NCBI RefSeq assembly: GCF_000150275.1 | Contig: NW_002060960.1 | Span: 248,001 to 312,000 of the forward strand | Reading direction: 5' to 3' | DNA: 64,000 nucleotides | Origin: Trichoplax adhaerens | Taxonomy: Eukaryota > Animalia > Placozoa | In this document: positions 8,587 through 53,900 of the stretch, piece after piece | Layout: each line of letters opens with the position of its first letter | How positions within the stretch are numbered: the stretch's first letter is position 1 | Notes under the pieces: generated by a model | Seen by the model: the letters and a program-made list of their open reading frames with translations, nothing else | The model's database searches: none | Told to the model about the DNA's origin: nothing | Translations under genes and position numbers: made by a program

Positions 8587-9732
8587 ATGAGTCTTTGTAT
8601 TAAAGGAATTGCTTCTGAATTAGCTCAGGAGAACACTTCGATGATGCGATCGCTTGATCTTGTACATGAAGGCTGGCAGAATCCATCGACTGTCAGCAAT
8701 AATGAATTGATACCTGGTAGTCGGTTAATCAAAAAATACAATGGAACCATAGAATTACTTCCTAAAACACCAGGAGAGATTATCGGAGAGCAAATCGTAA
8801 GACCTGTCTTAGATGCAACTCTCTCTGTTGCAAAATCAACCTTGAACATTTTAACGCAAGGTTTCAACTTGTTGGATCGTGGAATGAGTAAAATGTTTCA
8901 AATACTACCTGCAGCACAGGCTACTGATGTAGGACAGATTGCTTATTTTGAAGGTAGCTGTCCAGAAGGATGGAAAAAGTACGTCCAAGCTGAAGGTCGG
9001 TTTGTCATTGCTGCTGGATCATTTCGTGGTCGAAGTTATGACGGTAGAGTAGAATCTGCAAGTTATAGTACTGGTCAAAAAGGTGGAGAAATTAAACATA
9101 GATCTACTATCAATGAAATGCCTCATCATAAGCATGATTTTCGAGTTAACAAGAATGGGGCTATTGGCGAAGGTGTCTTACTAGGAAATACACCTAATGA
9201 GGGCCCTGGATACTCTGGCGGTGGCTATTATCATCTTGGAATTAGCAGTGCTCGTATGAGGTATGCTGGAGGCAATCGACCTCATAACAACATGCCTCCT
9301 TATATTGCTCTTCAAGCATGCCAAAAAATCAAGGATATTGAGCTATCTGGATATGCTCAATCTTCTGATTTAACTACTACAGCTCAGCAAACTCAATCCA
9401 CTTTGGCTGTTTTGAAAAAGACTATTGAATCTCATCAAAGGAGCTCTAATGCTACTGTCCTTGCAGTTAGCTCTAGGGTTGCAAAACTGCAAAAAGATCT
9501 TGAAAGCTGCAAGCGAAATGTTACTTGGATAACAGCCAATCTAAAACAAGCTCAAAGCAAGGATTCTCTGCAGACAGAAATGATCTCTTTCCGCGATCGT
9601 TTTTCCCTCTTAGATGATCAAGTTAAAAGTAATCGAAAATTCTCTGATACTTTATTATCGGTCATTGATCAATTGAAAAGCGAAATTGCTGCTTTAAAAA
9701 GAACATCAGAATATGAAAGAAGAAGAAGATGA
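8587..9732 (+). CDS. Intronless 381-aa protein: N-terminal leader + phage tail-collar/gp10-gp12 C-terminal-like domain + C-terminal coiled coil
   Basis: Single long ORF. aa ~115-247 (nt ~8929-9327) carry VGQIAYFEGSCPEGW...GRFVIAAG...GQKGGEIKHRSTINEMPHHKH...AGGNRPHNNMPPYIAL, the motif series of tail-collar/microcystin-dependent-like/baseplate fibre proteins. aa ~260-378 show heptad-like L/I/V periodicity. AATAAA at ~9742 and ~9767. Confidence 0.8.
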   Translation: MSLCIKGIASELAQENTSMMRSLDLVHEGWQNPSTVSNNELIPGSRLIKKYNGTIELLPKTPGEIIGEQIVRPVLDATLSVAKSTLNILTQGFNLLDRGMSKMFQILPAAQATDVGQIAYFEGSCPEGWKKYVQAEGRFVIAAGSFRGRSYDGRVESASYSTGQKGGEIKHRSTINEMPHHKHDFRVNKNGAIGEGVLLGNTPNEGPGYSGGGYYHLGISSARMRYAGGNRPHNNMPPYIALQACQKIKDIELSGYAQSSDLTTTAQQTQSTLAVLKKTIESHQRSSNATVLAVSSRVAKLQKDLESCKRNVTWITANLKQAQSKDSLQTEMISFRDRFSLLDDQVKSNRKFSDTLLSVIDQLKSEIAALKRTSEYERRRR

Positions 9733-15002: not shown

Positions 15003-15928
15003 TTAAAGGTTACCATGTGTTGATAAAGTGGCAGAATCGGTAGGGTGGATTTGTAATTCTGCTTCGTAAACTAATTGGCTAATTTTAAAGCGTATAATAC
15101 TACGAGTTCTTTGTGGAAAATGGCCAGTGACGGTGGCGATCGATTCGAAAAATTTTAACATTTCTGTTTCTCCTTCGTAGAAGTTAATTTCTTCTGCTTT
15201 TGTATCGTTCACTTCTACAGTATCTGTTTGCACGCCTCGATCATTTGTTTTAACTGCTATTTTTCTCTTTCTAGTACCACATAATGATGGAATTACTTTC
15301 TGAGGTGCTATCTCCATGGTTGGCTCTTCTTTATCGCTCTGATCAGATACTAGTACATCCCATAATGTAGCACTTTCCTCAGTTTGGCCGTCATCCGAAT
15401 TGGAAATTCTACTACTGAAATTATAAATACATTCCTTTCTTTAAATTTAAATTTTAATAATATTAATTACTTGGCCACATTCACTTACTCTCAACTATGA
15501 ATCTGCTTAATTAATTCACAGAATTTGAGTATTACCCTCTTGGTTTTATATGTGATGAAATAAATTGCATTTCCTCGCCATATTTATAAGACATGGATAT
15601 GGGGTTACTTTGATCGGCGCTTGGTTCAGAATTTTTAGGCGAAGTGAGTTTGGCATTTTTACGAAAAGAATCGCGTAGATTTTTCCAATTCTTTCTTGCT
15701 AATTCTCCTGTTAGAAACTAGGGCTTAGATTAAAATGTTTCTTAGAAACTGCATTTACAATCATTAAAATTGCTTACCATGGATACTTAATGCTTCCCCG
15801 ATAAAGCCCCATATTTTATCCTTTTTTTTAACATCAGAAAAACCCTCATGATTGGTATCATATAGAATAGGATGTCTTTCAACTAAATGGATTAGCCTTT
15901 TCTTTTCCTCGTTTGTTAACTTTTGCAT
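15003..15928 (-). CDS. MADF (Myb/SANT-like) domain + BESS-like motif transcription factor, 244 aa
   Basis: Exons 15778-15928, 15536-15707, 15003-15414 (735 nt, phases consistent). MADF signature LIHLVERHPILYDTNHEGFSDVKKKDKIW...ARKNWKNLRDSFRK...YKYGEEMQFI. C-terminal BESS-like FFESIATVTGHFPQRTRSIIRFKISQLVYEAEL. Confidence 0.88.
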
Positions 15929-18900
15929 TATTTAATTCCAATGCAGCTTGCAAACGCACCTTCCGATAAAAATGGTATAGATATGAGAGCATATCAAAAG
16001 ATTCCGATATAATTTAACCGTATTTAAATTTTACAACTAAGCAACTACATACGCTGTGAAACGATTTGTATTACTGTCAAATAGATAAAACCCAGTAGGA
16101 ATAAATTGTGTAATTAATCTAATCCCTGTAAGGTTAACTATGAACACCACCCCTTTGGCCATTTTACCATAACTGCAATCTATTTTGGTTTAGCTTATTA
16201 TTATATTTATAAGTATTGACAATTTACTGTAGAAGGGAAATAGATCGACGCTTGTAGATATAATTAAATTCTATTGAAAGTTATGACTAGTCCGATTACC
16301 AAAGATATTTATATTGCCTTCTAGTCAGTAAAAACGCCATAAAACAAATTGCTTGAACTAATAAATATAATTGCTTGAAATTACTAATGAATATCCACGT
16401 TAGCCAACTTACCGTCGCTGGAATTCTATTAGGATTTCAGTTGAGGACTTTACCAGAGTCAGCGGTTAAGAAATAATAGAGAAATGTTAGAATTGCTTAT
16501 GATACTTTCTATAATTTAATACAACTTCTAGTTTACCCTGCCAATCTACCGTACAATTTCATCCCGGAATACAGATAGCCGACACAGAGATAATTAAGCT
16601 TGTGGGCAAATGTCTATAGCTGAAAGGTCATTACTGATAAAATGGAAAATTGAAAGTTTTTAACTAATGTCAATCTCTTTCAAATGCACCAAACGAAAAT
16701 TGTTTATTACTATTAATCTTATTTTAATTATGGAAATGTTTAAAATTAAAATAATTGCGTATGTAAAGGTACAGATATTAAAACTAGTCCCAAGTACTAG
16801 TACTAGAACCCTTCTGATTTTGAATATTGACATTAAGCATTAATTAGATAAAGAAACGCCGCTAAAATGCCATCCACATTTTTGGATCAAAGCTGTCGCG
16901 GTAGTGAATTAACGGTAAATTATATTTGTATAGTGAGTTAAAATTTTAAATCAATGTAAAAGTAATCATCTAGGGCCTAAGGATAACTGTACTTACAATT
17001 TATAACTCCCATGTGATTCTCAATGTCAATAAATGACAAAGATGAAAGCATGGCTAATGTGTTAGAATAGCAAAACATCACATTTAATGACATTATTTCG
17101 TCTTGATGAGGTGGTTGCTATACAATAATTTCATCCAGCAACAGTAATCATTCTAACTTCCAAATGTCTAAATTATCAATATATTACGATCAGTATCAAG
17201 TTAATTTTATTTCCGGAAAAAGATAACATTGAGATGGCAACTAGCCTAAAATGCAAAATCATCAATAATAATCAGCTCAAATCGGGTTAATATTTATCTA
17301 GTACTCGATAATGAATAATTGGCAAGCTGAAATTTAAAGGGCAACATTGGAGACATCTAATAATCTGAAAAGCTATCTTAATATTGAATAACTACCAAAA
17401 TAACAGCCGGTCCTCTTATACGAGTTTTATTGATTATCTGTACTATAATTTATTTAACCGACTAGATACCATTAGCGTAATTACTTATGTGCCTGAAATA
17501 CAGCTATCGTAGAAATCATATCAGATTATATGATTTCAGCCAGATAATAATTAATCATGGCTTTGCCGTAAATTAGCCGGCACATCGAAACATGTTTTGA
17601 CGTTAATTTTCATGCCAACCAACGCAATCATGATTATTTCACCGGTATGATAATTTATAATTATCTGATAATTGTCATTAACCAGCTGCATATAAAGACA
17701 GTACTCACACGAAATGCTATAATCATAAACATGAGCTGAAAGAGTATTTATTTTAAAGGGATTTAAATTTGTCTTAATTTAAGCGACAAGATGGAAAGAT
17801 GGTGATAGTCGATTAGGATCTCGCTTATGGAGTCGAATATTATCTTGTCATTTAGAACTGCAATCGTAAATAATAGCCAATCGATCATTTTACCGGCAAG
17901 GGATTTAAATGCTTGCAAGATTTATAGAATGCTAAAATCATGACTACAGAGCCAACTTAAATACAATTGCACCACCTACAATGAATTTTAATTATTGCTT
18001 TTCTACAATTTCAGTCAGAAATAGTGGAAAAATGGCAATTAGTCTAACAGGCTTAAAATCATTTTTGTCAAGTTCAATAACGCCATTTTTATCGATTGAT
18101 CATGGATAATTATCCCTAAAATTATTATCTGACAGCAAGATGCGAAGATTGTTCCAGGTTTAAAGTACTAAAATCATGGACCTTGATTTCATCTACTGTT
18201 ATCATTAGAATGTACATTTTACTAATATGGATCAATAGTAATGTCAAGAAATTAAGTAGGAAAAAGCTTATTTGCAAATAAAAGTTGGAGATAAAGTAGC
18301 GCTTAGAAAAATAATTAATACGAGAAATAAATTTCCATGTTATTTCCTGTTTGTCAATTGAAAAATTAGCGTATGTTGGTAGCGGTTAGTTCCTAGAATT
18401 ATTTTCAATCAGCACAACATAAAGATTGTTACAGGTCTAAAGTGCTACAATGATAAGCCTCCATTTCTTCCATCATTGTCACTAGAATAGGTATTGTACT
18501 TACACCTGTCGAAGGTTTGGTTCTAGTTATGTCAAGAAATTGAGTTGAATCAAGCTTATTTGCTAATCAAAATTAAGAATAAAGTAGTGCTTAATAATTC
18601 ATGTATAGAAGCAGAAATAAATTTTCGTGTTATGGTTGCTATTGACTGAAGAATTTGGCGCATACTGTATGTCGGAAGTGGTTTGTAATGCCATATCCAA
18701 GGTAAATACACAAAGAGCGATGCTATTTCCTTAAAACTATTTATAATCGTAAAAATCGTCTGTTGATTTCAGTAGCTGGAAATTTCTTGAATACTTTGAT
18801 ATCCAATGGAGCAATCATCGATTCTATTTAGATCAAACTACGAGTGGTAAGGAATGATAAAAGGTTTTACGCTGGCATAATACATCCAGTGTCAATCAAT

Positions 18901-20914: not shown

Positions 20915-21432
20915 ATTCATGTTCTATTTTCTTACTCATACCAGCAGCTAGCAGTTTATTTCAATCTGTATGTAGTTCTTCAATTAAGGATGAGTATTGC
21001 GTCATGATTATCGATTTTTACGATCCAATTTTCCCTTAGATTGACTATTTACGCAGACGATTTAATTTTTAAATGACTCTAAACTCAATTTCAGCAATAA
21101 ATAGTGCAAGCTAACAGTTCTAATGACAGTTTCATAGTTTATACTATAGTTTTATTCTCTTTAATTCAGTATGAACTATAACCTTGATATATATTACCGG
21201 GACATATTCTTCAAAATAGGCATCCTACACCATATTACACTATAAAAAAAATGAAGTTATCACTTTGCAATGGCGTCAATTAATTCATATTTTATGATAG
21301 ACTGCTGTAAAGCTTCCCTGAATTGGCTAGATTTGATATGAGATATTAAAACAGGATCGATGTAGTCTTCTGATAATGATTTCGTATTACTATAGTAACT
21401 CTCCATTTTGAAAAAATGTTTAGGAAATAATC

Positions 21433-23074
21433 ATGCCTTATGATACGAATAACGAATTTGCTAACCTCACACGTAAGTTGAATGATGATGAAATCGATTG
21501 CCCTGACAAAATTGGATACTTTAAATTGCGTGCTGGCGATAAAGGATATCTGACCGTTTTACCAGAATATAAAAGTAGTAAAATATTGAAGACCATGTTT
21601 GTTGGAGATCGTCGTATAGGCAAAAGTAAGTGAACATTGTGCAATCGATCGCCTTAGTATTACTTTAATATTCAAACATTATATAGTCTCTGATAACGTC
21701 GTCACGGTTCTTTAAAGAGAGTGAATTAAATGCTATTTTGATCAAAACTAATTTTAAATGGCTGGCGATTAGCGCTAAGCTTTACATCATAGTATAATCG
21801 AACCTATACCAATCAGCAAAGTCGTTGTTAATAGAACTTGCCGATAAGCTTGAATTGGATATAGCATAACTGCTATAAGCTAGTCTTATCGCTATCTAAA
21901 ATTTGAGCTTTATGTTCATATTTTAGAAAACATACACGTACATTAAGCTAGAATCCTTTCGATAATCAGTTTAAAATGAAAACGTCATGTAGTTCTTATT
22001 CATTTGTAGCAAGATGCTATACTTTAATTTTGTTCAATTACAGTAATATAGGCTAGTCGACGATTTACATGGGAAAACACATAGGAAATTTTATTTAAAG
22101 ACTAGGCTAGACTTAATATTAATGTGGATTAGAACTGAAGCTATGCAAACTAGTGTTTTGATATTCAGATTTTTCAAGCTAATATGAATAGCATGTCATT
22201 TATTAAAAGTAATTTCCTTGATTACGATTTTACAAGCTCTATTGATCCAAGTTAATAATTCATTTAACTGTAACTATTTATTTTTCTTGACTTTAGATGA
22301 ATTTATAATTCAGTCTACAGATCTTTCTGAAGCTAAAAAGAAAGACAAAAATATGTGTAATGACTGTGAAAATAAATCTGCAGTAGATTGCTTAGCTTGG
22401 AAATGTCATAAGAAAACGTATTTTCTTGCTGGTAAAAAGGCACCTGCACCGAAAGGAAAATGCTTTCAAATAAAAGATCGAAATTATGTCAATTTGGTAT
22501 TTGTGGTAAGTTTTTATAATACTGTATCGTAGATACTATAGCAAATATAATACCAGTAGGTGCTTTTCACAGTAAGCACTTTACAAAAAAGTTTTCACAA
22601 TTTGTTTTCGCTGTCTAAATATACCTTACGTTCATGTCTTTCCTTTAGGACAAAGATGTATATGATAAAACTACGGAAAAAGAGGAATACTTTGCATTGT
22701 ATAAGATAGACTTGAATTCGAATATCTATATATTTCGTCATGAACCATTCTACCTGAAAGAGGGAGTCAAAAACAAGTTCCTTTATACCATGCAATGCAA
22801 GCAAAAGATTTCAAAATCGAATAGCGATGACGACGATTGTAGTCTTACACGCGTACATACTTATCACACTATTGAAGATGCCGATTGTGGATCTAACCAG
22901 TATTTTCCCAGTGATACTCATTTTGAAAGGATTTGTGTAAGTGATGAAAAGCAAAGCAAGGATTGTAGTTGTCTAGCTTCAAAAAATGATAAAACAACGG
23001 ATATACTTGATTCTCAGACAAATGGCTCACTAGAAGAAGAAAGCAATACATTTAAAGAGGGCCTGTATGATTGA
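21433..23074 (+). CDS. IL-1-family-like beta-trefoil protein A (275 aa, no signal peptide)
   Basis: Exons 21433-21625 (ends phase 1), 22297-22505 (ends phase 0), 22649-23074; 828 nt open. Gene structure is strongly supported by paralog B. Family call rests on manual alignment to human IL-1beta, e.g. LVFV|DKDVYDKTTEKEEYFALYKIDLNSNIYIFRHEPF vs [38 protein letters not shown]. Confidence 0.7.
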
Positions 23075-24219
23075 GTGCTTTAATCTTCTGAACTCCGTTG
23101 GAAAATTTGCTCAACAGCTATGATACTCCGATTCTTTCTCCAAGAAATACTTCATCGTACGGTGTTATGGTATGAAATACTTGTCCATTATTACACTAAC
23201 ACAAACTTACGTTCTAAGCGACTGGTGATCAAAAGATTAACTAAAACCGACTAGTGTACAGAACTCACTAACTCTTGTTATGTAGTCGTAGTAATGATAC
23301 CGCATAATACTAAAATCGTATTAATAAATTATATATATAATTACAACAACGATCAAATTTCAACATCTATAGAAGTTAATTTGATGTAAATGGCTATGTT
23401 AGTGGCTATAATTAACAGAAGATCAATTGAATTGTAAGGATATATTGACGACCGATTGCATCGTTGCAAAAGGAAATATTCTCATAGTTGAGTATCTTCC
23501 GGCATTCAAATCGTATTTTTATATTTTAATGGAATAAGTTGTTCTTATTTACGTCGTGTTAGTTGGATCTCAATTCATGCTAATAAGGTACCGTAATTGA
23601 CATAGAAGGATACTTAGATCTTTAACGAGCTTACGCTAAACCATACAGCCCTTCGTAGAAACTGAACCTGCTTTCAAAAATACAATTCCAGAATAGCAAA
23701 GCGTATATTGATTTCTTTATTACCAAGAACTGACCTACCAATTAGATTATCAATAAATAGTATTAAATTACTTTGATTGCATACTTGCTCATTATTGAGT
23801 AGAGTAAAATGGCATAAGGCGGTGCAATTCTAGTTCTGTTAGCTTATACTGAACATATTATTATTGTAAAATGAATATTCCTATATGGAAGGATAAGTAG
23901 AATAGAGTTATGCGACTGTAATATTGTTGAACAACTTCAATAAAACTTGCTTTATTAACTATGTGTGTTTATCAATCTATGTTAATTGCAACGATTCGAA
24001 GGATTAGGATTTATGATCGAGGGTTCAATAGATTGCTAAAGTTGGGTTTCATAGTCATTTACAGATGAACATCAACACTTTGAATAAGAAGGTACATTCT
24101 TTATTACCAAGTAGAAATGGATTCGTATTAAGAGGATTTCCGTAGAACAAATTCAAGCTATCATTCATGACATAAGATCGTGGGAAGTACTTTGCAGATT
24201 AGTATTGAAGTGATAGATT

Positions 24220-24468
24220 GATTTTTCCTGTTCTTTCTTACTAGTTCCCCTATTAGAAACCGAGGTTTAGATTAGAATGTTCCATGTAAACTACTCTCAT
24301 AACCGTTAAATTGTTTACCATGAATACTTAATGTTTCCTCGAAAAAATCCCATATTTTATCCTTTTTTTAACATCAGAAAAACCCTCATGATTGGTATCG
24401 TAGAGAATAGGATGTATTTTCACTAAATAGATTAATCTTTTCGTTTCCTTGTTCGTTATCTTTTGCAG
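24220..24468 (-). pseudogene. Truncated MADF pseudogene (exon 1 + start of exon 2)
   Basis: Copy of 15680-15928. ATG is changed to CTG (24466-24468), the A8 run is shortened to A7 (exon 150 nt instead of 151, a frameshift), and the rest of the gene is lost at the duplication junction. Confidence 0.85.
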
Positions 24469-27400
24469 TATTTAATTCCAATATAGCTTGCAAACCCACC
24501 TACCAATATAGACGGTTTAGATATCGGAAGATATCGATAGATTCCGGTGTAATTCAACAGCATTTAAATTTTACAGCTAGGCAACTACGTAGGTTATGAA
24601 TCAATTTATATTACATCTAATAGATAAAAATCCAGAAAGAATGAACTGTATAATTAATCTAATCTCTGTAAGGTCAATTTCGAACACCCACATTGGCCAT
24701 TTTACCATAACTGCAATCCAACTCAGTTTAGCTTCTTATCGTATTTATAAGTATTGACAATTTAGAAGGAAAAGAGATCAACGCATACAGGTATACTTTA
24801 TTGCTATTAAAACTTCATAACTAGTCCAATTGCCAAAGATATTTATATTACGATCTGGATAGTAAAAATGCCATAAAATAAATTAATTGAAATAGTAAAT
24901 AAAAATTCTTAAAATTGGTAATGAACATCCATTTTAGCCAACTTTCCGTGGCTAAAATTCTGTCGGGATTTCAGTCTAGCGCTTTCTACTAAACAGCGGT
25001 TAGGAAACAGTAGAAAAATATTAAAATTATTAATAATAATTTCTTTAATTTAATACAACTTCTACTTCGCCCTGCCAATTTACCATAAAATTTCAACTCG
25101 GAATACAGATAGCCAAGACAGAGACAATTAGGCTTATGGGCGAATATCTATCGCTGGAAGGCCATAACTGATAAAATCCAAGATTGAGAGCTCTTAACTG
25201 ATGTCAATATTTTTTAGTTGCATCATGTAAAAATTGTCTTTGTTACTATTGATTTTATTTTTTAAGGAAATATTGATCATTAAAATAATTTACGCATGTA
25301 AAGTTATCGCATTAAAACTAGATTCCTTTTGATTTTGAATATCGACTTTATGCATCGATTAACTAAAGAAACAACGCTAAACCGACATTTATATTTATGA
25401 ATCAAAGCTGTTCCGGTGGTAGATTAACGGCAAATTATATTTTATGATTGGTAGAAATTTCAAATCAATGTATAAAGAACTGTTTAGGGCCTAAGTATAA
25501 CTGCATTTACAATTTTCAAAGTCAATAGATGACAAAGATGAAAGTATGACTAATGTGTTAGAATAGCAAAACATCACATTCGATGATATTATTCGTCTTG
25601 GTGGTGTTATTAAATAATACGATAATTTCAGCCAGTAATAGTGACTATTCCAACTTCCGAATATTTATATTGTCGATGAATCCTGATCAGCATCAACTTA
25701 ATTTCATTGTAAGGGCCGCATCATGCCTGAAATGTGGAATCATAAATATTACGTAGCTCAAATCGGAATAGGAATAATATGCTAATCAAACTTAGCAAGA
25801 TAGAAAGATGGTAATAGTTGAATTAGAATCTTGCATATTGAGTCGATTAACATCGCATCATTTAGAAGTGCTATCGTGAATGAAAGCCAAATACTGGCAA
25901 GATGTATAGAATGCTAGAATCAGAACGACAGTGCCAACCTAGATATTATTGTATCGTCTATAATGAATATTAATTATTGTTTTCCTGTAATCTTAGTCAG
26001 GAATGGATGAAAGATGGCAATCAGTCTAATAGGCTAAAATCATTAATTATTGAGTTAAGTAGCATCATTTTATCATTTGATTATGGATAATTGTCTAAAA
26101 TTATTTTAACTAGCAAGATATGAAGATTGTTCCAGGCTTAAAGTGCTAAAATGATAAGCCTTGATTTTATCGACTGTTGCCACTAGAATAGTTATTGTAC
26201 TAACATGGATGAATAGTAATGCAAAGAAAATTAGTTGAAAAAAGCTTAAATGTTTTAAAAATTAACAACTAAGTAACGCTGAATTATTAGTACGAGAAAT
26301 AAATAAGCGGTTTGTAATGTCTTGTCTCAATTAGGAAATACACGAAGGGCTATGACATTTCCTTAAGCTATTTATAATAGCAAAAACCATATCTTAATTT
26401 CAGTAGATGTAAATTTCTGAGTAGTATGATATCCAATAAAGCAACTAATGATTCTATTTTGATCAAGCTACGAGTACTAAGAAATGATAAAGATCGTGCA
26501 GAAGCAACTCTAATCTTGATCAATCTATCACTAACTATTATCTTATTAATTTTATCGTTCAATTAATAATAAATTAAAATACAGTTTATGGTGCGATCCA
26601 TTGCATAATAATGACTGTAATTCTCTACATGATGCCAAAGCCTTAATTTCTAGTAAACATCCAAAAATTTGTGAGATGGAATTCAATGTACAAATAGTAA
26701 GAGGGTATAAAAAGCAATTTTACGAAAGTAATGGCGTGCAGGCATCATAATGTAGATTTTTCCAGCTAGCAATTACGAGAATAGAGAAAATAGATGTATT
26801 ATGATAGCCCTATAAAGATACTATTTATTTATATTTACTTAGACTTGGATCTAGGAGCAACCCTGGCCATTTATATTCATAAATTAACTGTGGCAATATT
26901 TATTATTGCCAAGATGTAAAAATTGCATGCTAAACATTCTAAAAATGTTTATGTTCATCAATCTCAATTAATCATAGCGTTTAATATTCTGCTTATAAGG
27001 TTTTACACCGAATAATGCATTATGCATCAAATCAATCTCAAATAATTCATTTGTTTCTATAAAGGATTTTCATCGTTCTCATATAAAATCCTGCTTTTAA
27101 TTTGCCTAATTCGATAGCTTATTGAACACCTACTTACCAATAAAGTTACCAAAAATTAGACATAAGCGCCATTAAAATCGTTCGATTTGAAGATTAACTT
27201 TTTTGATCAACTCAAAACCTCTAGTAATAAGTATTTATTATGCATGTTATACCTACGTAATATTTAATATTCTGCAGATAGAAATTTAAAGTAAACACTG
27301 AAGGTTTCGCGTCCTTCATTTGTTCATTACTGAATTCAGACGCTCATGAAATGTGATTTAATTAATACCAACTATGAATAAATAAAGTTGCGATCTATAT

Positions 27401-29375
27401 TTAGATTAACTTACTGTAAGCCTATGTTCACTCCAATTGTAAATTATGATAGAGTTTAAATATAGATTCAAAGAGAATGTTGGTGTAGATGCCTTTTTAT
27501 TGTAGCGTTATTCATATACCAATTAACCAATTAATGTGTTCGTCATATACTCTTATTAACGCGGTAATACTTTTAAATCATACCCTATGTGTGATCTTTA
27601 AGATGCAATGATTAGAGACAAATAACATTATCAATCCTTTTAAAACAGTATTTTTACAGTATGGATATGCCAAGATTTTAGATTGAATTGAAAATGGAGA
27701 GGAGCGAGTAATTTGTTCGCTTGTTATGCTTTCTTTACTCGCGATCCTTTACTTCCAATAACTCGAGACTAATAGAATCAGCAACACTGTTTCTCAGCTA
27801 GTCGGCGAATCAAGTTAATTTCAAGTACTTTACCGAACAATCTTAATAGAGGGTAAGCTATAATATCTCTACGGGAGATCACTAACCAGGCATTGCCATA
27901 TTTTTAAATAGTACATATAACCACACTTCGTTTAATGAAAGCTGGCGATGATGTAATGGAAAAGATCGAAATTTAAACAAATAAAAATTTTATAATATTC
28001 CGACCAAGGGCAAGACAGATGAAATTTTGTTGACAATCATAACTCATTTTGATACTGATTTGAAAGGAATGTCCCATAAAAAAGGGTGCACGAAAATTAA
28101 TGCGGATTAGAGATTCCCCTGTATTCGGACTATTATACTTTGATTTATCGGATTCAAGACAAATGAAATTGCTAAAACGGATGCATATACTACATAAATT
28201 AAAGTTGGAAATTAGGTGAAATTTATTTAATAGCTTTACTAATACTTCTATCAAAAGTGATACCAATACTGACGGATGTAAAAAGTGAATGTTTGGTGTG
28301 TTCAACGTCAACCTTTAATAAAAATATTTTGTAATTGAAGGTATTTTTTACCTGGGAACTAATTATAACCAATTAAATGATCTGCTTTTAATCACAACAG
28401 TGGGTAAATATAGGGAAAGTAAATATACATACAGCATTAATAGAGTTACAGTAGATCAGGAATTAATACGTTTATTTACTAAAAACAAGTAGTCCCGTAC
28501 CGTTTATCGCGGCTCAGCCGAAAAGTATATAAGCAATACCTGCGAGTTGATCAGATCATCTCTAATCCGTTCCAAAAATTCAACCTCTACTCCACTGAAA
28601 ATACTCGTAAGTACTTATTCGTGTTCTATTTAGTTTTATTTTTAAGTACAGAATGATATTCTTGTCAGGAATAGGTTGCAGTTTTGCTAGTTTTTGATAA
28701 ATCCGACGTTGCATTTCATACCTACTTTAAACGAGATTGAACTTTTACATATGATGAAACTGTCTTACGCATACCATGAAACATTAGTAAAATTTCGATG
28801 CGGTTCTTCAATTGAAGATGAACACCTCGTCTTGACTACCTAGCTGTACGAGCCCATTTTATCTCAGATTTACTATTGACACAGATGATTTTATTTGCTT
28901 ATGACTTTAAACCCAATTCCAGTAATAAGTAGTGGAGGCTAACAGTCCTAATGACGGTTCTATAGATTATACTGTAGTATTTTTCTCTTTAATTCAGCGT
29001 AACTTTTTACCTTAAGGGTAAATGTTTTCAAAATAGATATCTACAGTGTTCTATAATTGATTAGATGATTATTTTTTGGTATGCGAGTCATATTGCCTGC
29101 TGTATCTGTCGTATACTGTAGATTTATATTGCTTTATTTCTCTGAATATAAAACAGCATTATACGCCTATGTTACACTGTAGAAGAAAATAAAGTTATCC
29201 ATTTGAATTTATAATGGCGTCAATTAATTTATATATTATGATACACTACTATAAATCATTTTTGAATTGGCCACCGTGGACATGAGATGTTAAACCAGAA
29301 TCGATGTAATCTTTTCATAATGATTTCATGATACTATATTAAATCTCAATTTTTGGAAATATGTAGGAAATAATC

Positions 29376-31166
29376 ATGCCTTCTGATGCTGGTAACGGAC
29401 CTGCTAGCACCGTGTATAATTTGAATTGTGATGAAATCGATTGCGCTGAAATAATTAAGTACTTTAAGTTACAGGCTAGCGATAAAGGATATTTGATAGT
29501 ATTACCCGACAAGAGTAATAAAGGCGATAACACATTGAAGACCATGTATGTTGAAGATCATCTTGTAGGCAAAAGTAAGTTAATATTGTCCAATCGATCG
29601 CTTTAGTATTGCTTCAATATTCATGAAGTACGAGCAAAATTGAACCAGTTTCAAAATAAAAGCAAATTGCAACAGCAAGTTAACATTATATAGTCTATGA
29701 TGATACAGTCGCGTTCTTTAAAGTAAGTAAATTAAATGCTATCTTGCCCAAAATTTTTTGCAAATGGAATTGCCAGCAGTTCGGTGCAAAGTCACTTTAT
29801 TTTTAAGCTTTGCACGTTCATAGAACTTGCTAATAAGCTGAAATTGGATATAGCGTGACTGCTATAAGTCAATGAGAGCACCTAATCAAATTTGAGCTTC
29901 ATGTTCATATTCTAAATGTACATATATACACTAAGCCAGAATTATTTCGATAATCAGTTTACAAATAAAAATGTCATATCATTCTTATTCATTTATAGAA
30001 TGATGGCACATTTTAATTTTGTTCAATTGCAGTGAAAAGGAATATGGCTTAGTCGACGACGATCTGCAATAGATTTTAATTTAATTTTTAAACGTTGAAA
30101 ATTAATCAGCATCATTTCGGAAAACACATAGGAATTTTCATTTTAGTACTCGGCCATACTTTATATCAATGCAGACTATAACTGACGCTATATCACCTAG
30201 TGTTGTTGTTGACACAGTGTTCAGGCTTTCCAAGCTAATGTGAACAGGGTGTCATTTATTAAAAGTAATTTCCTTATTTATGATTTTACAGGCACAGATC
30301 TAAGCTTATAATTCATTTAATTATAATTATTTATTTTGTTGCCGCTAGGTACATTTGAAATTCTATCTGTAAACATTCCTGCACCTACAGAAGACGGCCC
30401 CAAGTGCTGTTCAGATAATAGCTGTAGAAAGCGTTCAGCAATAAATCGCTTAGCTTACAAAATTGACGACAAAATATATTTTCTAGCTGGCGAAGAGGTA
30501 ACTGCACCTCAAGGAAATTGCTTCAAAATAGACGGTCGAAGTTATGTTAATTTGGTATTTGTGGTAAGTTTTCTGGTGGTGTGTTGTAAATGATGTATCA
30601 AATACAGTGTCGCCACTTATTTTCCACAGTAGACACTTTATAGAGAAAAGTTTCACAGTTTATTTTCCTTCTCTGAATACGCGGTTATGTCCTCCCTTTA
30701 GGACAAAGATGAATACGATAAAATTATCAAGTTAAAGGGATACATTGCTTTGCATGTCGTGAAAGCGAATTCGGGCAATAGGGACATTAGATTTCGCGCT
30801 GAACCATTCTGCGAAAGTAAGGAAGCCAAAAACAAGTTCCTTAATGCCACGCAACATAAGCCAATGAATACAGCATCGAATAACGAGAACGGAGACTATT
30901 CTGCTGTACAAGTGCATGTTTATCACACCATTGACCAAGCCGAATGTACAGAGCGCGACAGTTTACCAAATAATACTAATTTTCGAAAAATTTGTGTAGC
31001 TAATAAAAAGGAAAATAAGGATCATAGTCGCTCAACTCCAGCGAATAATTCAGAAAATGATACTCTTGATTCCGAAGCAAAAGATCCTCCAAACTCTTTC
31101 TCATCAAAAGAAATAGGTGGTAAGTTTTCAGGAGATGAGAATGGTCCATATTTGCGTAGCACTTAG
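29376..31166 (+). CDS. IL-1-family-like beta-trefoil protein B (292 aa, no signal peptide)
   Basis: Exons 29376-29574, 30349-30563, 30702-31166; 879 nt open, same intron positions and phases as gene A. Shared blocks DEIDC, YFKL.A.DKGYL.VLP, LKTM.V, YFLAG, YVNLVFVDKD.YDK, FR.EPF, KNKFL, VH.YHTI, F..ICV, D.LDS. Confidence 0.7.
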
Positions 31167-31629
31167 TTGCATCCAGCTCTGCTTTGAAAATAATGTAAGC
31201 TTGACCTCTTTTTCAAAAAATAGAATTGCAGGGATAGCATAACGTAGTTTGATTTCTTCACTAACTACAATTGGCATACTAATTAGACTATCTGTGTACA
31301 TTATTAAACGGCTTTGATTGTACACTTGCTTGTTATTGAGTAGCGTAGAAAAAAAAAGCCACACTGTGGTGCAATTCTTGTTCTATTAGCGTATGTTAAA
31401 TGATTTATATGTAAGGACAAGCAGAATAGACTTATTCGAGTGTGCTGAATAACCTCAATAAAATTGGCTCTTATCAACCAATTGTATTTATTAATCTGTG
31501 TTACTGCAACGATATGAAGGATTAGGATTTTTGATGGAGGGTTCAACAGATCGGTAAGGCTAGGTTTCATAGTCATTTATAGACGTATCACCACTTGAAG
31601 TAAGAAAGTGCGTTCTTGTTTTATTATCT

Positions 31630-32068
31630 AGTAGAAATGGTATCGTGTAATAACAATGATCTCGCCAATACTGTCTTAGTCAAATGGAGCTTTCTAAAAG
31701 GCTTTTATTGCAAGGTTTTAGGAATAGTAGAGCAATAATTCATTAGTACAAGAAACTAGTCTAAAATCTAAAATCCAGTAGAAATGGCATCGTATAATAA
31801 GGCTGATCTCTCCAATACTGTTTTAGTCAAATGGAATTTTCAGAAGGGCTTTTATTACAAGGTTTTAGCAATAGTAGAGCATAATGAAGTACTACAAGAA
31901 ACTAGTCTAAAATCTAAAATCTAATAGAAATGGCATCGTATAATAAAAATAATTTCACCAATATTGTCCTAGTCAAATGGAATTTTCTAAAAGGCTTTTA
32001 TTACAAGGTTTTAGGAATAGTAGAGCAATAATTCATTAGTATAAGAAACTAGTCTAAAATCTAAAATA
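31630..32068. repeat. Tandem repeat, 3 x ~147 bp
   Basis: AGTAGAAATGGCATCGTATAATAA...TAGTCAAATGGA...AAGAAACTAGTCTAAAATCTAAAAT at ~31630, 31777, 31923. Confidence 0.9.
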
Positions 32069-43899: not shown

Positions 43900-44657
43900 C
43901 TGTTCAAGGTACACGAAGCAGGCCCAACCAAATAATTGTTCGAGATAGAGGTCAATTAAGGAGTCATTGCATTAAGTTAATTAAAAGGTGTACTGTCGAT
44001 ACAAGGTATCGATGTTATACAGTACCTTTGCTAAATCATCCATGATATGAATATAAGAATACACAATACCCTTGGGCACTTTGCATGCTTTTAATTGACA
44101 ACCAGTAGACTCCCTCTCCGCAAATACGCGTCTACCTGGTGTCTATCTAACATTATTGTACCAGTGAATGAAAAGGTTAACACAGGGATAAAAAGGCAGT
44201 TATAAATTACTAAAAGCTATAAGAAGGACGACAACACCATGACTATCTTTGGATTGGCCATATTACCTACTAGTCGATAGTAGTTATATCCATAACGGTC
44301 TTGCACTCATCGTGGCACTCCCTTATTATATTTCAGGATAGTCATCTCCTACTACAGTACAGTATAGAACTGTCCTGCACCAATCAACTTCAACACAACG
44401 CCACTCACATCAACATGTGATCAGATCAGCAATGCTGGTCTCCATCACGTGACTCACGTGAGCAGAATGAGGTCAAAGATTATTGGAGCGAATTTTTATC
44501 TTATCGGTGACACTCCATTAGAGTGGCAGGAAATAGCTTGCGATTCTACATTCTCGGTGAGAAAGTGTTATGGTTGGATAGAATTGATCAAGTTTTCCTC
44601 TTTCAAAGTTCAAGGTTTACTAACTTGAACTTGTGTTGATGAGCAGACTGATTGGCC

Positions 44658-47600
44658 ATGTCTGCTGAAACACCGACAGAAACAACCACTCTACTAGGAC
44701 AGCAAGAATGTGCCAAAATTAATATTAGCTCTAGCGATGAAGCTGTCCAAGCGAAGATCGTGAATCCTTCCAAAGATGCTCAGTCTATTCCGAATCGGAT
44801 TAAAATTATTGTCTTGTGTATATTATTTACCGAATTTGCCGAAAGTATTGCATTTTATAGTATTGCTGCCAATCTTATATTATTTGCCAATACACATTTG
44901 GGCTTTACGAATACACAAGCAGCGACATTAAGTTTTATCTACGTTGGCACAGGTTATGCTCTCCCTATATTAAGTGGGTACTTAGCGGATTCCCATCTTG
45001 GCCAGTATAACACCATGTATCTTGGTGGCCTAATTTATATTGCGGGTATCTTAACCGTCTTCTTAATGACAGTGCCCTATCAACTGCCTTTCTCTACCAG
45101 TGCCAAAACATCTTATTTTATTGTTGGTCTAATTTTGGTAGCAATAGGGACTGGAGGTATGGCATTGATTGAATGAATCTCATTTCCAAGATAAATTGTT
45201 CTGATAACTTGTCTAGTCGAAAGAATAGACATTCGGTATCAATTAATTGTATTAATAATATATATACAATGAATTAGCCGTTTGACTATGATGAATATGC
45301 TATGAACGATTATGATCTAATAACGGTTGCATTAATATTCCACAATAAATAGATTATAGTGATCTTCAACCAATCATTCTATAATCAGTTTATTATCAAT
45401 TGAACCTATTCAATCTTGCTATGTTATACTTCTCTTTTTAATAGTGTGGATATGATACACTTAGAAACTAGTTAGGATTGAATACATAACAATTATCAAA
45501 AGGGTCTCTTTAAAATAGATATTCGAGTTATATTATTCTGTTACTTATAAAAAATATTCTAATTAAAATTCCTCTCACGATGTACATCCTTAAACTAAAT
45601 TGGAATAGGAGTAACGCTGCTAATTTCCCTAGTGTATCAGCTCTTATACACTATTCGAGAAATTAATCTAGTTGCTAACTCATTATTCTATTGATAATAA
45701 TATTCTAATTAACATTATTATTATGATATATACAAACTCAATTCGAATAAGAGTATCGCTGCTAGTTTTCCTAGTATATTAGTTCGTTCACTATTAGAGA
45801 AAATTAGTCTAGTTACTAATTGCATTATTCTATTGATAGTAATGTCCTAATTGGAATTGTTATCGTGATATACAAACTAAAATTATAATAACAGTGTCGC
45901 TGCTAACTTGCCTATCATATCAATTCATAGATTATTAGAGAAATTAGTCTAGTTACTTCATAAGTAGCTTCGTCAATCTTAGCAAATTGGGTTCAAGCGA
46001 TACAAGACTACATTTAAGATTTTATTCAGAACTTCATTAGATATCTGTATCCATGCTAGGACTTTCAATTCTCGAGCGACATAGGTCTATCAATAGAAAC
46101 CCAGTGACACATAGAATTATATAAAACGAATTCGATCGTAATTGTATAATTGGGGTATAGTAGTTTCGTATTATTTTATTTTTTTTTTTTGGAGGGGGGT
46201 GAATTCTTTCTGGAACGATAGCACATAATAATAAAAATATATGGGTAGTATACGTAGTGATTAATAAAGTTAAATTAGTTACACGTATTCGTATCGCAAA
46301 AGATGATCGTATCGGCGATGGAATTTCCTTGTTTTTCTACTTAAGCACATGATAAGTTTGTGCGTACATTCACGCTAATGAGAAGATGTACTAAAAGATA
46401 AATTGAAAGCAGAATGATAACAATAATGCTTTATGTATTCATTTGATAGCTTATATTCAAAGTTAGGCAGGAAATCATGTCATTTCTTTGCGCATTTATA
46501 ATTTACGTATATATTCTTGTCCTAATGTTGTACTACGTATATTTTGATCAGGTATTAAATCGAATATTTCACCTTTTGGTGCAAGCCAACTGGAAAGTTG
46601 CGGCCCAGTTTATGTCCAAAGATTTTTTGCTTGGTTTTACTTTTCTCTTAATTTAGGATCGCTAATCTCATTCACTGTCGTAGCCTACATACAACAAAAT
46701 GTAAGCTTTTTCTATGGCTTTATGATTCCTTCTATTGCTATGATATTAGCCGTGGCCGTATTTGCATCAGCCCGAAAATACTACGAACTCTATACTCCAA
46801 GTAAATATTTCATAATTCTTGACTAGAATTTCAAATTAACTTAAAATCAAGATAGAAAAAATATTAATAATTTTCACGTCATTATTGAAGTATTACTCCA
46901 TTTGATAATATTCGATCTCTAAGCAAATTTGTACTTTATATTATTGCTAGATAGATATATAAGTTGATTCCATCACTAAGTCTCTTGTTACTTTAATATT
47001 TTTTGCAGAGGGTTCGTTACTTGGAGAAGCGCTAAGTATCACATACCAAAGTTTTAAAGTTAGACTCTCCAAGCGGACTAATATTATTGATAAAAGCAAT
47101 ATCCAAAGTTTCTTCGATTACGCAAAAAAAGAGAATGGGGGAAAATTTGATGCTCATCAAGTGAATAGGATCAAGCCCTTAGGACGCGTAATACCCGTCT
47201 TCCTTCTAATAGTCTTGTTTAGAACGGTTTACTTTCAGGTATGAAAAGCATCCTGCAGCATGAGATTATTTTTGTTCGGTACTTTAGTTCGTGCTATTAA
47301 ATCTTTAATTAATGTTAAGCACATTCGCTATAATGGAAATTATTGTAAACAATGCTTTTACTATTATTCCAGTCAAATTATATTTATATGTTTATAGTAA
47401 ATAATGAAGTCTAAAACCGATAAATATGCGTACTATAAACAACAGCTCTTAAGTATTTCAAATGAAATTATTGCCTAATTCAATAATTGTTTACGATATG
47501 TATGTATTATATCTAATACAATTATAAGTTTAAGAATGACAAAATTTTGCGAAATCTCTTAATCCTACGTTTGGTTTCATATCCTGAATAGATGTCGACA

Positions 47601-50901: not shown

Positions 50902-53900
50902 ATGGCAGATAATCAGCCTATAATAGCTAGCTCTGAAGAATCATCATCACTGGTAGACAAACTTTATTCGCCTAGTAATGTCTATGATCTTGAAGATCCC
51001 ACTATTAAAATCAATATTCGAAAAAGCAATGATGATAAAGTTCCTCTAAGAACAAAATTGGTAGTTTTATGCATTCTACTAACGGAATTTAGCGATTCTA
51101 TAGCAATAAGTAGTGTAGCTGCCAATATAATATTATTTGCCAACACTCACCTAGGATTCACCAACCCGCAAGCGGTAACATTAAATTTTATCTTCACCGG
51201 TATTCGTTGTGCATTTCCGCTACTTGGTGGATGTGTTGCAGATGCTTTTCTTGGACAATATAACATGATGTATGCTGGCAGTTTAGCATACATTCTTGGT
51301 GTTATGGCTATATTTTCAGTCACTATCCCATTTAGTGATCCTTTTTCCAATGGTGCAAAAATAGCCTTTTATTTACTAGGCTTATTCTTAGTTGCTGCAG
51401 GCAGTGGAGGTAAAGATTATGCTCATAAAGATCTATATCAAGCAATTCTATAATAATTATCATTAGAGATTTTATTCCTTGAGCCTCATCTCTAGAATGT
51501 CGAGAAATGAACGCTACTAAAATTAAACAGCGGTGTTGTTAATAATATATGTACTCAAAGAGAAAGTCTGATTCTATATTAATTATGCCACAGCTGTAGA
51601 TTTGCAGCTATGGCTAATTGATCGACCAATTGCATTTAGTTTTATATCTTTCGTCACTTAAATATCATATCTAGACACATTTGTAATGAAATTTTAAATA
51701 ATTAGGGTCATCGATTTCGGCTAAATTAATACTTATAGCTTGCATCTTACAACTATATTTTGAAGTATGAACTTGCTAACTCTTACTAATTTAATTTAAA
51801 ACTTTACGTAAGTTATGTTCTAACATTTACTCTTTATGAGTAAAATTTTTACTGGCTACTGTATGCTTCCTAGTACTTATAGTATTAGATTCGTAACGGT
51901 ATTCATATCTCATTGGTTACAATTTTGCTACATACTGGTAGTGCAATATAGGCTTATTATTATCATATAAGTATCCTTTATTTCTTAGCATTGATTAATT
52001 AATTTAGGATATTATAATAGGCGATATAAATTAAGGATGGTAACTATACCCACAAAGCTGTTGTACTGCTTACTAAATCTGAAATTTGAATCTGGTTGTG
52101 ATTTATTGAATAGGAGTTAAATCAATTATAAGCCCATTTGGTGCAAGACAATTGGAAAATTGCAATCCTATCTATATTCAGCGATTTTTTGCTTGGTATT
52201 ACTTTTTTACCAACGTTGGGGCACTCATTTCCTTTACAGTAGTAGCTTATGTCCAGCAAAATGTAAGTTTTTTCTATGGATATATGATTCCTGCTATTGC
52301 TCTTGTAATGGGTACTACTATATTCGCCTTGCCTCGAAACTATTATCGAAATTCTTATCCAAGTAAGCGCCTGTTGTCTAGTTCGAGATAAATTACCTTG
52401 TCTTGAAATATTTAAAGTGTAGTTGGCTCAATTGGATTAACTGGCATGTTGTAATTTGCTTTCTCTTTCGCATTGCAACAATTTGATATTTGTAGCCAAA
52501 GTACAGTACTGCAATGTAATAGACTGCTATTGCTCTTACCTATTAGGTTAATCATAAAATGAATTTCGGAAATAACTCTACAAGTATGTTAAATTAAATT
52601 TATAGAGGGTTCGTTATTGGGAGATATCATTGGAATTACTTATCAAAGTTTCAAATCAAAATTTGGCTGCAAAACAGTGTTGGTTGACACAAATAATATA
52701 AAAAGTTTTTTTGACTACGCTAAAAAAGAAAATGGAGGGAAATTTGACGCTAGCATAGTAGAAAAAATAAAGCCTCTAGGACGCGTTGTACCTATCTTTT
52801 TACTAATCGTCTTATTTAGAATGATTTACTTCCAGGTAGAAATCCTAATATTACTTTCGGGTCTATTTGTGTTCATGTATTCTTTATTTGATTGGATCTA
52901 TATTTAAATTGATAGGACTTTCTTAACAACTACCGTGTAGCGTAATGTGATTTGATGCATACCATTTACTAAATGTTACTGTTGACCTTAACAACCAAAA
53001 GATGATAACGACATGGTTTTTGCAAGGGGAATCTATGAATTTATATTTAGGCAAGCTTAAATTACCGGCGGCAGCGTTGACAACATTTGATATTATCGCT
53101 GTGTTGATTTTCATACCTGTTGTCAATTATGGTGTGTATCCTCTATATCAAAGAATTTTCGGCGTAGCCATTACCGCTACAGAGAATTGGTTAGAAATTA
53201 TCTTGCTAATAATCTTTTTTATAGAATTGGCGTACCTATTTTGTCAAAGTAAACAGATATGTATAAACGTGTATTACATCATTAATAGGGACCGGCATGG
53301 TATTTGCTTCTCTTGCAATGGTAGTGTCTCGAATTGTTGAGCGATACAGACTTATAGATGTTCATGAAAATCCTCTTCCTCAGATTATATCGGGCAAAGT
53401 TTTCAATGCATCTGCCAATATTAGCATTCTAGCTCAAATACCGCAATTTGCGTTGATTGGATTAGGAGAAACTTTCACAAGTGTAACAGGTAGCGAAGAT
53501 GCTTTATACATTTATTTTAGGCTCCTCTGCGATTGCATATGTACGGGTACAATATTTACTTATACCGTTTATATTTACCGTCATTTAATTTTGGCTGTAT
53601 CAGGATTTGAATTTGCATATTCTGAAGCGCCAGAGGAGCTAAAAGGGATTATGACAGGACTCTACCTTTTGGCCATCGGTTTAGGTGGTTTTATAGGTCC
53701 TCTCGTGATTACGATAATTAATGCTATAACCTACGATCCTAAAGTTGTAAATTCCAAGTGGATTCCTAAAAATACTAATAATGGTCACCTTGATTATTAT
53801 TTTTATTTTTTAGCAGGTATTTCGTATAGTAGCGTCTTAATAAAATAATAAAATTTGGTTTTAAACATTGGTTAGGGTTAGATAGCGTTTGGATTGGTAT

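Follow-up and report, generated by a model that had tools for sequence, protein, structure and literature searches.

Two genes of identical structure lie in tandem

The stretch of Trichoplax adhaerens DNA analyzed here (contig NW_002060960.1, positions 248,001 to 312,000; 64,000 nucleotides, referred to below as the window) carries a tandem pair of genes that a first-pass annotation had taken for interleukin-1 (IL-1)-like cytokines. Direct reading of the DNA showed that both genes lie on the plus strand and share the same three-exon structure, with GTAAGT donors, AG acceptors and introns in phase 1 and then phase 0. Gene 1 encodes a product of 275 amino acids and gene 2 a product of 292 amino acids (Table 1). 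Both gene models of the first-pass annotation proved exact, and its placement of the DNA in Placozoa was also right, as public records list the encoded proteins under Trichoplax adhaerens.

The gene 1 model is letter-for-letter identical to the public protein TRIADDRAFT_60839 (P0002), and gene 2 corresponds to TRIADDRAFT_60840 (P0003, 309 amino acids) except at the 3′ end. At that end, the Joint Genome Institute (JGI) model splices near 31118 into a downstream 147-bp tandem repeat, and its last exon, drawn from this repeat, is probably an annotation artefact. The 292-amino-acid model agrees with the annotation of Trichoplax sp. H2 (P0001). The repeat itself occupies window positions 31626–32067, where the 147-bp unit occurs three times with an 86% match and each copy contains a short open reading frame (ORF) of 33–46 amino acids that begins with ATG. 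The tandem pair is also present in Trichoplax sp. H2, as TrispH2_007245 (275 amino acids) and TrispH2_007246 (292 amino acids). All four proteins from the two genomes are annotated as uncharacterised or hypothetical, and a literature search with the four locus tags found no paper. In the searches described below, exons were used individually, and full-length queries were the stored proteins P0002, which is identical to the spliced model, and P0001 and P0003, which are nearly identical to the spliced models; the 292-amino-acid gene 2 product of the window was itself searched exon by exon only.

The pair arose by duplication and was found only in Trichoplax

The three exon pairs of the two genes share 53, 44 and 40% protein identity, with E values of 4e-21, 4e-20 and 3e-28, respectively. 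The duplication extends beyond the exons: comparison of the two halves of the locus with blastn outlined a duplicated unit of about 4.1 kb that includes the introns and flanking DNA. The exon-pair matches and the duplicated unit thus bear out the tandem paralogy that had been proposed for the two genes.

A six-frame search of the whole genome (105.6 Mb in 1414 contigs) with a profile of the four sequences returned these six exons only. An exon 3 profile compared with 1.84 billion representative proteins retrieved two protein clusters and no further relative, and the full-length proteins, the four-sequence profile and exon 3 alone, the last of which also takes in shorter fragments, retrieved the same two clusters only from 5.8 billion proteins, negatives that are limited by the possible lack of other placozoan genera in these collections. 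Judged by these searches, the gene pair is restricted to Trichoplax within the genome and the protein collections covered. In a secondary blastn comparison with the H2 locus, we also observed copies of a dispersed repeat, about 76–78% alike, at window positions 16460–17211 and 24220–25708, which lie upstream of the two genes and between them.

The reading frames are kept while the proteins change

Between the paralogues, the proportions of silent and replacement differences are almost the same (pS = 0.331 and pN = 0.329), which corresponds to a ratio of replacement to silent substitution rates (dN/dS) of 0.99. The nucleotide identity of the exons (75, 68 and 64%) is no better than that of the introns (76 and 69%) or of the upstream DNA (74%). 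These values are compatible with the explanation that the genes are non-functional, being decaying or chance open frames picked up by annotation pipelines, and it also fits this explanation that each protein is recorded on one contig only in the protein collection. Nevertheless, we regard it as scarcely credible. Both frames remain open across 33% divergence, and in simulations in which each gene was mutated at half the observed divergence with the base composition of the introns, freedom from stop codons was retained in only about 1 of 1000 trials per gene. The exon length differences between the paralogues (6, 6 and 39 nt) are all multiples of three, with introns that differ by 103 and 5 nt. 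The splice sites and phases are preserved in both copies and in H2, and two independent annotations are in agreement on gene 1. Because the frames are open, the length differences are multiples of three and the splice sites and phases are kept, the reading frame is under selection, with an overall amino-acid sequence that is free, or driven, to change.

The window (H1) was also compared with the corresponding H2 locus (L003), which is 99.2–99.5% identical to it over about 20 kb. In the whole codons of both genes, the 16 substitutions that separate H1 from H2 are replacements without exception, against 0 silent changes (P = 0.03 given the site counts), and a split codon of gene 2 adds one extra replacement. 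The replacement rate of 1.18% is twice the 0.57% measured over 16 kb of non-coding sequence from the flanks and introns (Fisher P = 0.009) and three times the 0.41% of the four introns (P = 0.012). Decay would not raise the replacement rate above the neutral rate. Six of the nine H1/H2 replacements in gene 2, and no silent change, fall within the 29 nt from 30349 to 30377 of exon 2, just past the fourth conserved block of the protein; this cluster may represent a selection hot spot in a single loop or, alternatively, a short tract of conversion. The ratio of 16 to 0, the excess over the non-coding rates and the paralogue dN/dS of about 1 support the conclusion that these genes evolve under positive selection. 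This is a new result for the gene pair, which ranks among the clearer signs of positive selection that can be obtained from two close genomes.

The products are leaderless proteins with conserved motifs in variable tails

Neither a signal peptide nor a membrane segment was found in the proteins, in which the highest hydropathy over 19 residues is 0.39–0.52. A scan for a signal-peptide exon upstream of the genes revealed nothing conserved in both copies. The earlier description of the proteins as leaderless therefore holds, both for the proteins themselves and for the upstream DNA, in which no conserved coding exon was found. The AG located 10 nt before each ATG (Table 1) raises the possibility of an intron in the 5′ untranslated region (UTR) or of a 5′ exon. 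Farther upstream, a block with 78% identity is conserved before both genes (window 20975–21169 and 28803–28997). It terminates exactly at a CTAAC that looks like a branch point, with a pyrimidine run and CAG, much as an intron would at its 3′ end. The block could represent an intron of the 5′ UTR or a regulatory element that the two genes have in common.

In each protein, a putative all-beta core spans about 210 residues (roughly 27–232) and is flanked on either side by acidic, poorly conserved tails. The residues that are invariant across the four proteins form about 13 short hydrophobic blocks, as expected of an all-beta protein, and the loops and both tails vary. Two short motifs stand out from the variable tails. 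The DEID motif and the Cys that follows it are better conserved than any other part of the N-terminus, which diverges elsewhere; they precede the putative first strand and are invariant in all four proteins. In the C-terminal tail, the sequence D-x-L-D-Ser is invariant in the four proteins although the surrounding tail diverges.

A beta-trefoil fold is probable

The model of the gene 1 product P0002 in the ESM Atlas has a predicted template modelling score (pTM) of 0.60. Its structural neighbours represent three distinct families of trefoils (RicinB_lectin_2, MIR/IP3R and Kunitz) and have template modelling (TM) scores of 0.38–0.46 by the query over 137–162 residues; the Kunitz neighbour reaches a TM score of 0.54 by the Kunitz row. 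Furthermore, all named feature neighbours of P0002 belong to the trefoil clan, namely the ricin types (Ricin_B and RicinB_lectin_2), I66, I48, CCL2-like and CDtoxinA. The feature neighbours of P0003 have lower scores and likewise come from the trefoil clan only (CDtoxinA, ricin types, AbfB, fascin and I66). These results from a language model and its structures give moderate support to a beta-trefoil fold (Pfam clan CL0066), which the proteins probably adopt. Of the earlier claim that these are beta-trefoils of the IL-1 type, the Atlas neighbours of both paralogues probably bear out the fold; the type finds no support in these neighbours, which are lectin, inhibitor and toxin families.

Several results weigh against this fold, and with it against the binding function that we propose below. 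The evidence for the fold is of one kind, a language model together with its own mid-confidence structure. For P0003 the Atlas offers a poor model (pTM 0.38), whose structural neighbours lie outside the trefoils and carry no meaning. AlphaFold2 yielded unusable models, with predicted local distance difference test (pLDDT) values of 26.7 for the four-sequence alignment and 28.6 for the trimmed core. Shuffled proteins reach a first Atlas match of 0.9 in 4–10% of cases and a uniform clan in 1/3 of cases. Searches of Pfam at E ≤ 10 with the six exon pieces and the whole proteins P0001 and P0002 found nothing, with IL1, FGF, Ricin_B, Kunitz and fascin included among the families, and NCBIfam gave no match. 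Sequence and profile searches of the PDB produced chance matches only (uS17 and dehydroquinase, E 0.4–2.5). The QxW motif is absent from the proteins, and no internal threefold repeat was detected by hhalign or by Smith-Waterman comparison with shuffles, which placed the three putative units at chance level. The missing repeat is compatible with a trefoil, given that IL-1, FGF and Kunitz proteins are likewise without symmetry at the sequence level.

Such results would also be obtained if the genes encoded lineage-specific orphan proteins, either of another all-beta fold or largely disordered, in which the trefoil signal is an artefact of the language model and the function is unrelated to the trefoil families. 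The failure of AlphaFold2 to find a fold and the lack of both a profile match to any family and an internal repeat agree with this explanation, as do the low mean pLDDT values of the two Atlas models (0.56 and 0.38) and the feature scores of 0.86–0.91, which chance can attain according to the figures given for the tool. On the other hand, the named feature neighbours of two proteins that are only 44% identical all belong to a single clan, P0002 has structural neighbours in three trefoil families over alignments of 137–162 residues, and the number and spacing of the conserved hydrophobic blocks fit twelve strands. In view of these points, we consider the orphan explanation unlikely, although it is a serious contender.

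An interleukin-1 relationship is not borne out

The first-pass annotation assigned the two proteins to the IL-1 superfamily on the basis of an alignment of short blocks with human IL-1beta. The Trichoplax strings that it quoted are present in the proteins. By hand count, with the IL-1beta strings as given in that annotation, the blocks contain about 20 identities over 96 ungapped positions (21%), which is no better than chance; blocks chosen by hand from any pair of trefoils, or from all-beta proteins that are not related, can reach an identity of about 21%. When the Pfam profile for IL-1 (PF00340) was set against the FGF, fascin, ricin and Kunitz profiles, as the annotation had suggested, none of them matched at E ≤ 10. 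A scan of the entire genome with PF00340 likewise gave no match at E ≤ 10, in a search that had no positive control, as the control genomes are without IL-1. The PROSITE signature of IL-1, which covers the strand 9–10 region, was absent from 4 of 4 proteins in a regular-expression search, and there was no match to the HBGF/FGF signature or to the FGF family of Pfam (PF00167). No IL-1 or FGF chain was among the PDB sequence matches at E ≤ 10, and for neither paralogue do the 30 closest clusters of the Atlas include one of IL1 or FGF. The annotation had itself held that best matches to other trefoil families would speak against IL-1. By this standard the nearest language-model and structural neighbours, which comprise lectins of the ricin type, inhibitors of the I66 and I48 families, CDT-A, MIR and Kunitz, count against IL-1. 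Membership in the IL-1 superfamily thus finds no support in Pfam, in the IL-1 signature or in sequence matches to solved structures, and the neighbours of the proteins are other trefoil families.

The segment F-x-x-E-P-F ... N-K-F-L-x-T may loosely resemble the strand 9–10 region of IL-1 and FGF.

An IL-1-type cytokine would be expected to have a receptor that combines Ig and TIR domains, and the first-pass annotation proposed a search for such proteins. TIR exons occur at about 12 loci in the genome. None of these loci lies within 20 kb on the same strand of the best 150 of about 330 candidate Ig exons (Ig_3 or I-set), and thus no Ig-TIR receptor was found in the genome among the Ig candidates scored. 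Kamm et al. 2019 reported 16 TIR proteins in Trichoplax sp. H2, none of which is a TIR-only protein with a membrane segment, and found no transmembrane protein whose cytoplasmic part consists of TIR alone (PMC6321704). The annotation also stated that IL-1-like genes have been reported from some invertebrates. According to Boraschi, IL-1 orthologues have not been found outside vertebrates (PMC9020223), and Rivers-Auty et al. described IL-1beta and IL-18 in vertebrates only (PMC5861070).

A broader form of the idea is that the genes encode a leaderless cytokine or alarmin of the IL-1/FGF type, either as a true homologue or as a functional analogue. It proposes a cytoplasmic trefoil pro-protein that a caspase would trim at DEID and DxLD, that would leave the cell without a leader and that a receptor at the surface would detect. 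The missing leader and the likely trefoil fold are in line with this proposal, as is the invariance of DEID-Cys and D-x-L-D-Ser, the putative cleavage sites, in all four sequences amid diverging tails; cytokines also fit fast evolution. Against it stand the missing IL1 and FGF matches and signatures, the lack of such chains and clusters among the PDB and Atlas matches, the TIR loci that lie away from the 150 best Ig exons, the reviews that place IL-1 in vertebrates and the low identity of the hand alignment. We consider a cytokine or alarmin of this type improbable, and true homology to IL-1 within it highly improbable. A true relative of IL-1 in Placozoa would overturn the vertebrate origin of the IL-1 ligands, but no test made here links the pair to IL-1. 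A caspase-cut, leaderless trefoil pro-protein that is released on damage or on pyroptosis-like death would constitute an alarmin system analogous or ancestral to IL-1 at the base of animals. This possibility is very doubtful; if it were true, an alarmin would be in use in an animal with neither an identified IL-1 receptor nor known cytokines of this kind.

Resemblance to trefoil binding proteins suggests a possible antagonistic role

Among the nearest language-model neighbours of the Trichoplax proteins are three families of fungi, the CCL2-like lectins (PF21595), the cospin-type I66 inhibitors (PF16850) and the I48 inhibitors clitocypin and macrocypin (PF10467). Beta-trefoil defence proteins of fungi are leaderless, occur in tandem copies, are restricted to particular lineages and diverge fast. 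The Trichoplax pair resembles them in all these respects, with no signal peptide, a tandem arrangement, occurrence in one lineage and fast divergence. However, there is no detectable sequence similarity between the two groups and no Pfam match at E ≤ 10. The Trichoplax core is also about 60 residues longer than the fungal trefoil defence proteins and contains inserted loops; the proteins have six conserved cysteines as well, and their acidic tails are long. Moreover, they occur in an animal and not in a fungus.

Other trefoil families offer partial likenesses. The ricin-type lectins (PF00652 and PF14200) are the top named neighbours by both features and structure (TM 0.42–0.44 by the query over 151–159 residues), but the Trichoplax proteins lack QxW, the threefold repeat and a Pfam match. 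The Kunitz/STI (PF00197) and MIR (PF02815) families are structural neighbours in the Atlas but do not match the proteins by sequence. Secretion and defined disulfides characterize the Kunitz/STI proteins. MIR domains sit in large conserved proteins, whereas the Trichoplax genes stand alone and evolve fast. With the IL-1 family (PF00340: IL-1beta, IL-18, IL-33 and IL-36), the pair shares a probable trefoil, the lack of a leader, tails with Asp motifs and a tandem arrangement; it differs in that no Pfam or PDB match, signature, neighbour or Ig-TIR receptor was found, and the IL-1 family is known only from vertebrates (PMC9020223).

Taking the evidence together, we tentatively favor the reading that the genes encode leaderless, trefoil-like binding proteins, found only in Trichoplax, that are used in antagonistic interactions; we hold it as a working proposal that may well be right. 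The tandem-duplicated genes encode leaderless proteins of about 280 amino acids, which would be made in the cytoplasm and whose core would most likely adopt a beta-trefoil fold with long inserted loops, some of which bear Cys. The conserved strands would hold the scaffold, and the loops and tails would change fast under positive selection. Diversifying selection on the loops could be understood because, as we propose, it is the loops that meet a changing partner. The proteins may be modules that bind in the way of lectins, inhibitors or toxins and that act in defence or feeding, against microbes, prey or predators, much as leaderless trefoil lectins and protease inhibitors do in the fruiting bodies of fungi. 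Two further points count against this reading: the six conserved cysteines are odd for a cytoplasmic protein, and it is analogy that, weakly, suggests the binding and antagonistic function. Genes of this kind are candidates for a little-known molecular arsenal that placozoans use in defence or feeding.

Table 1. Coordinates, in window positions, of the gene pair, its motifs and the duplicated unit
Feature	Position	Strand	Remarks
Tandem segmental duplication, copy A	20004–24126		Gene 1 and flanks; blastn of two halves, 68–78% identity
In-frame TAG, AG acceptor-like	21421–21423	+	10 nt before ATG; conserved in gene 2 at 29364–29366
Gene 1 (TRIADDRAFT_60839) exon 1	21433–21625	+	ATG to GTAAGT donor; ends in phase 1; P0002 residues 1–64
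DEID motif (residues 19–22), then invariant Cys (residue 23)	21487–21498	+	Gene 2 counterpart at 29430–29441; from invariant columns and a DxxD scan
Gene 1 exon 2	22297–22505	+	Ends in phase 0
Gene 1 exon 3	22649–23074	+	Stop codon included
DILD motif of C-terminal tail, then Ser	23000–23011	+	DTLD in gene 2 at 31059–31070
Tandem segmental duplication, copy B	27561–31646		Gene 2 and flanks; blastn
Gene 2 (TRIADDRAFT_60840) exon 1	29376–29574	+	Ends in phase 1
Gene 2 exon 2	30349–30563	+	Contains the H1/H2 replacement cluster at 30349–30377
Gene 2 exon 3	30702–31166	+	Open to stop, same as the 292-amino-acid H2 model

Neighbouring features of the window

Upstream of the pair, at about window 15100–15930, the H2 annotation places a gene for a 208-amino-acid protein with a MADF DNA-binding domain (L003:3688–4505, minus strand). 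An intronless ORF of 381 amino acids that begins with ATG lies at window 8587–9732 on the plus strand and matches Gp10_C, the C-terminal domain of the phage T4 baseplate protein gp10, with an E value of 4e-6 and 28.3 bits, barely above the cut-off. Downstream of the pair, two exons of transporter genes were found on the plus strand, one at 44652–45176 (MFS_1, E 1.9e-8) and one at 53297–53848 (POT/PTR2 family, E 1.7e-11), both of which are ordinary neighbours.

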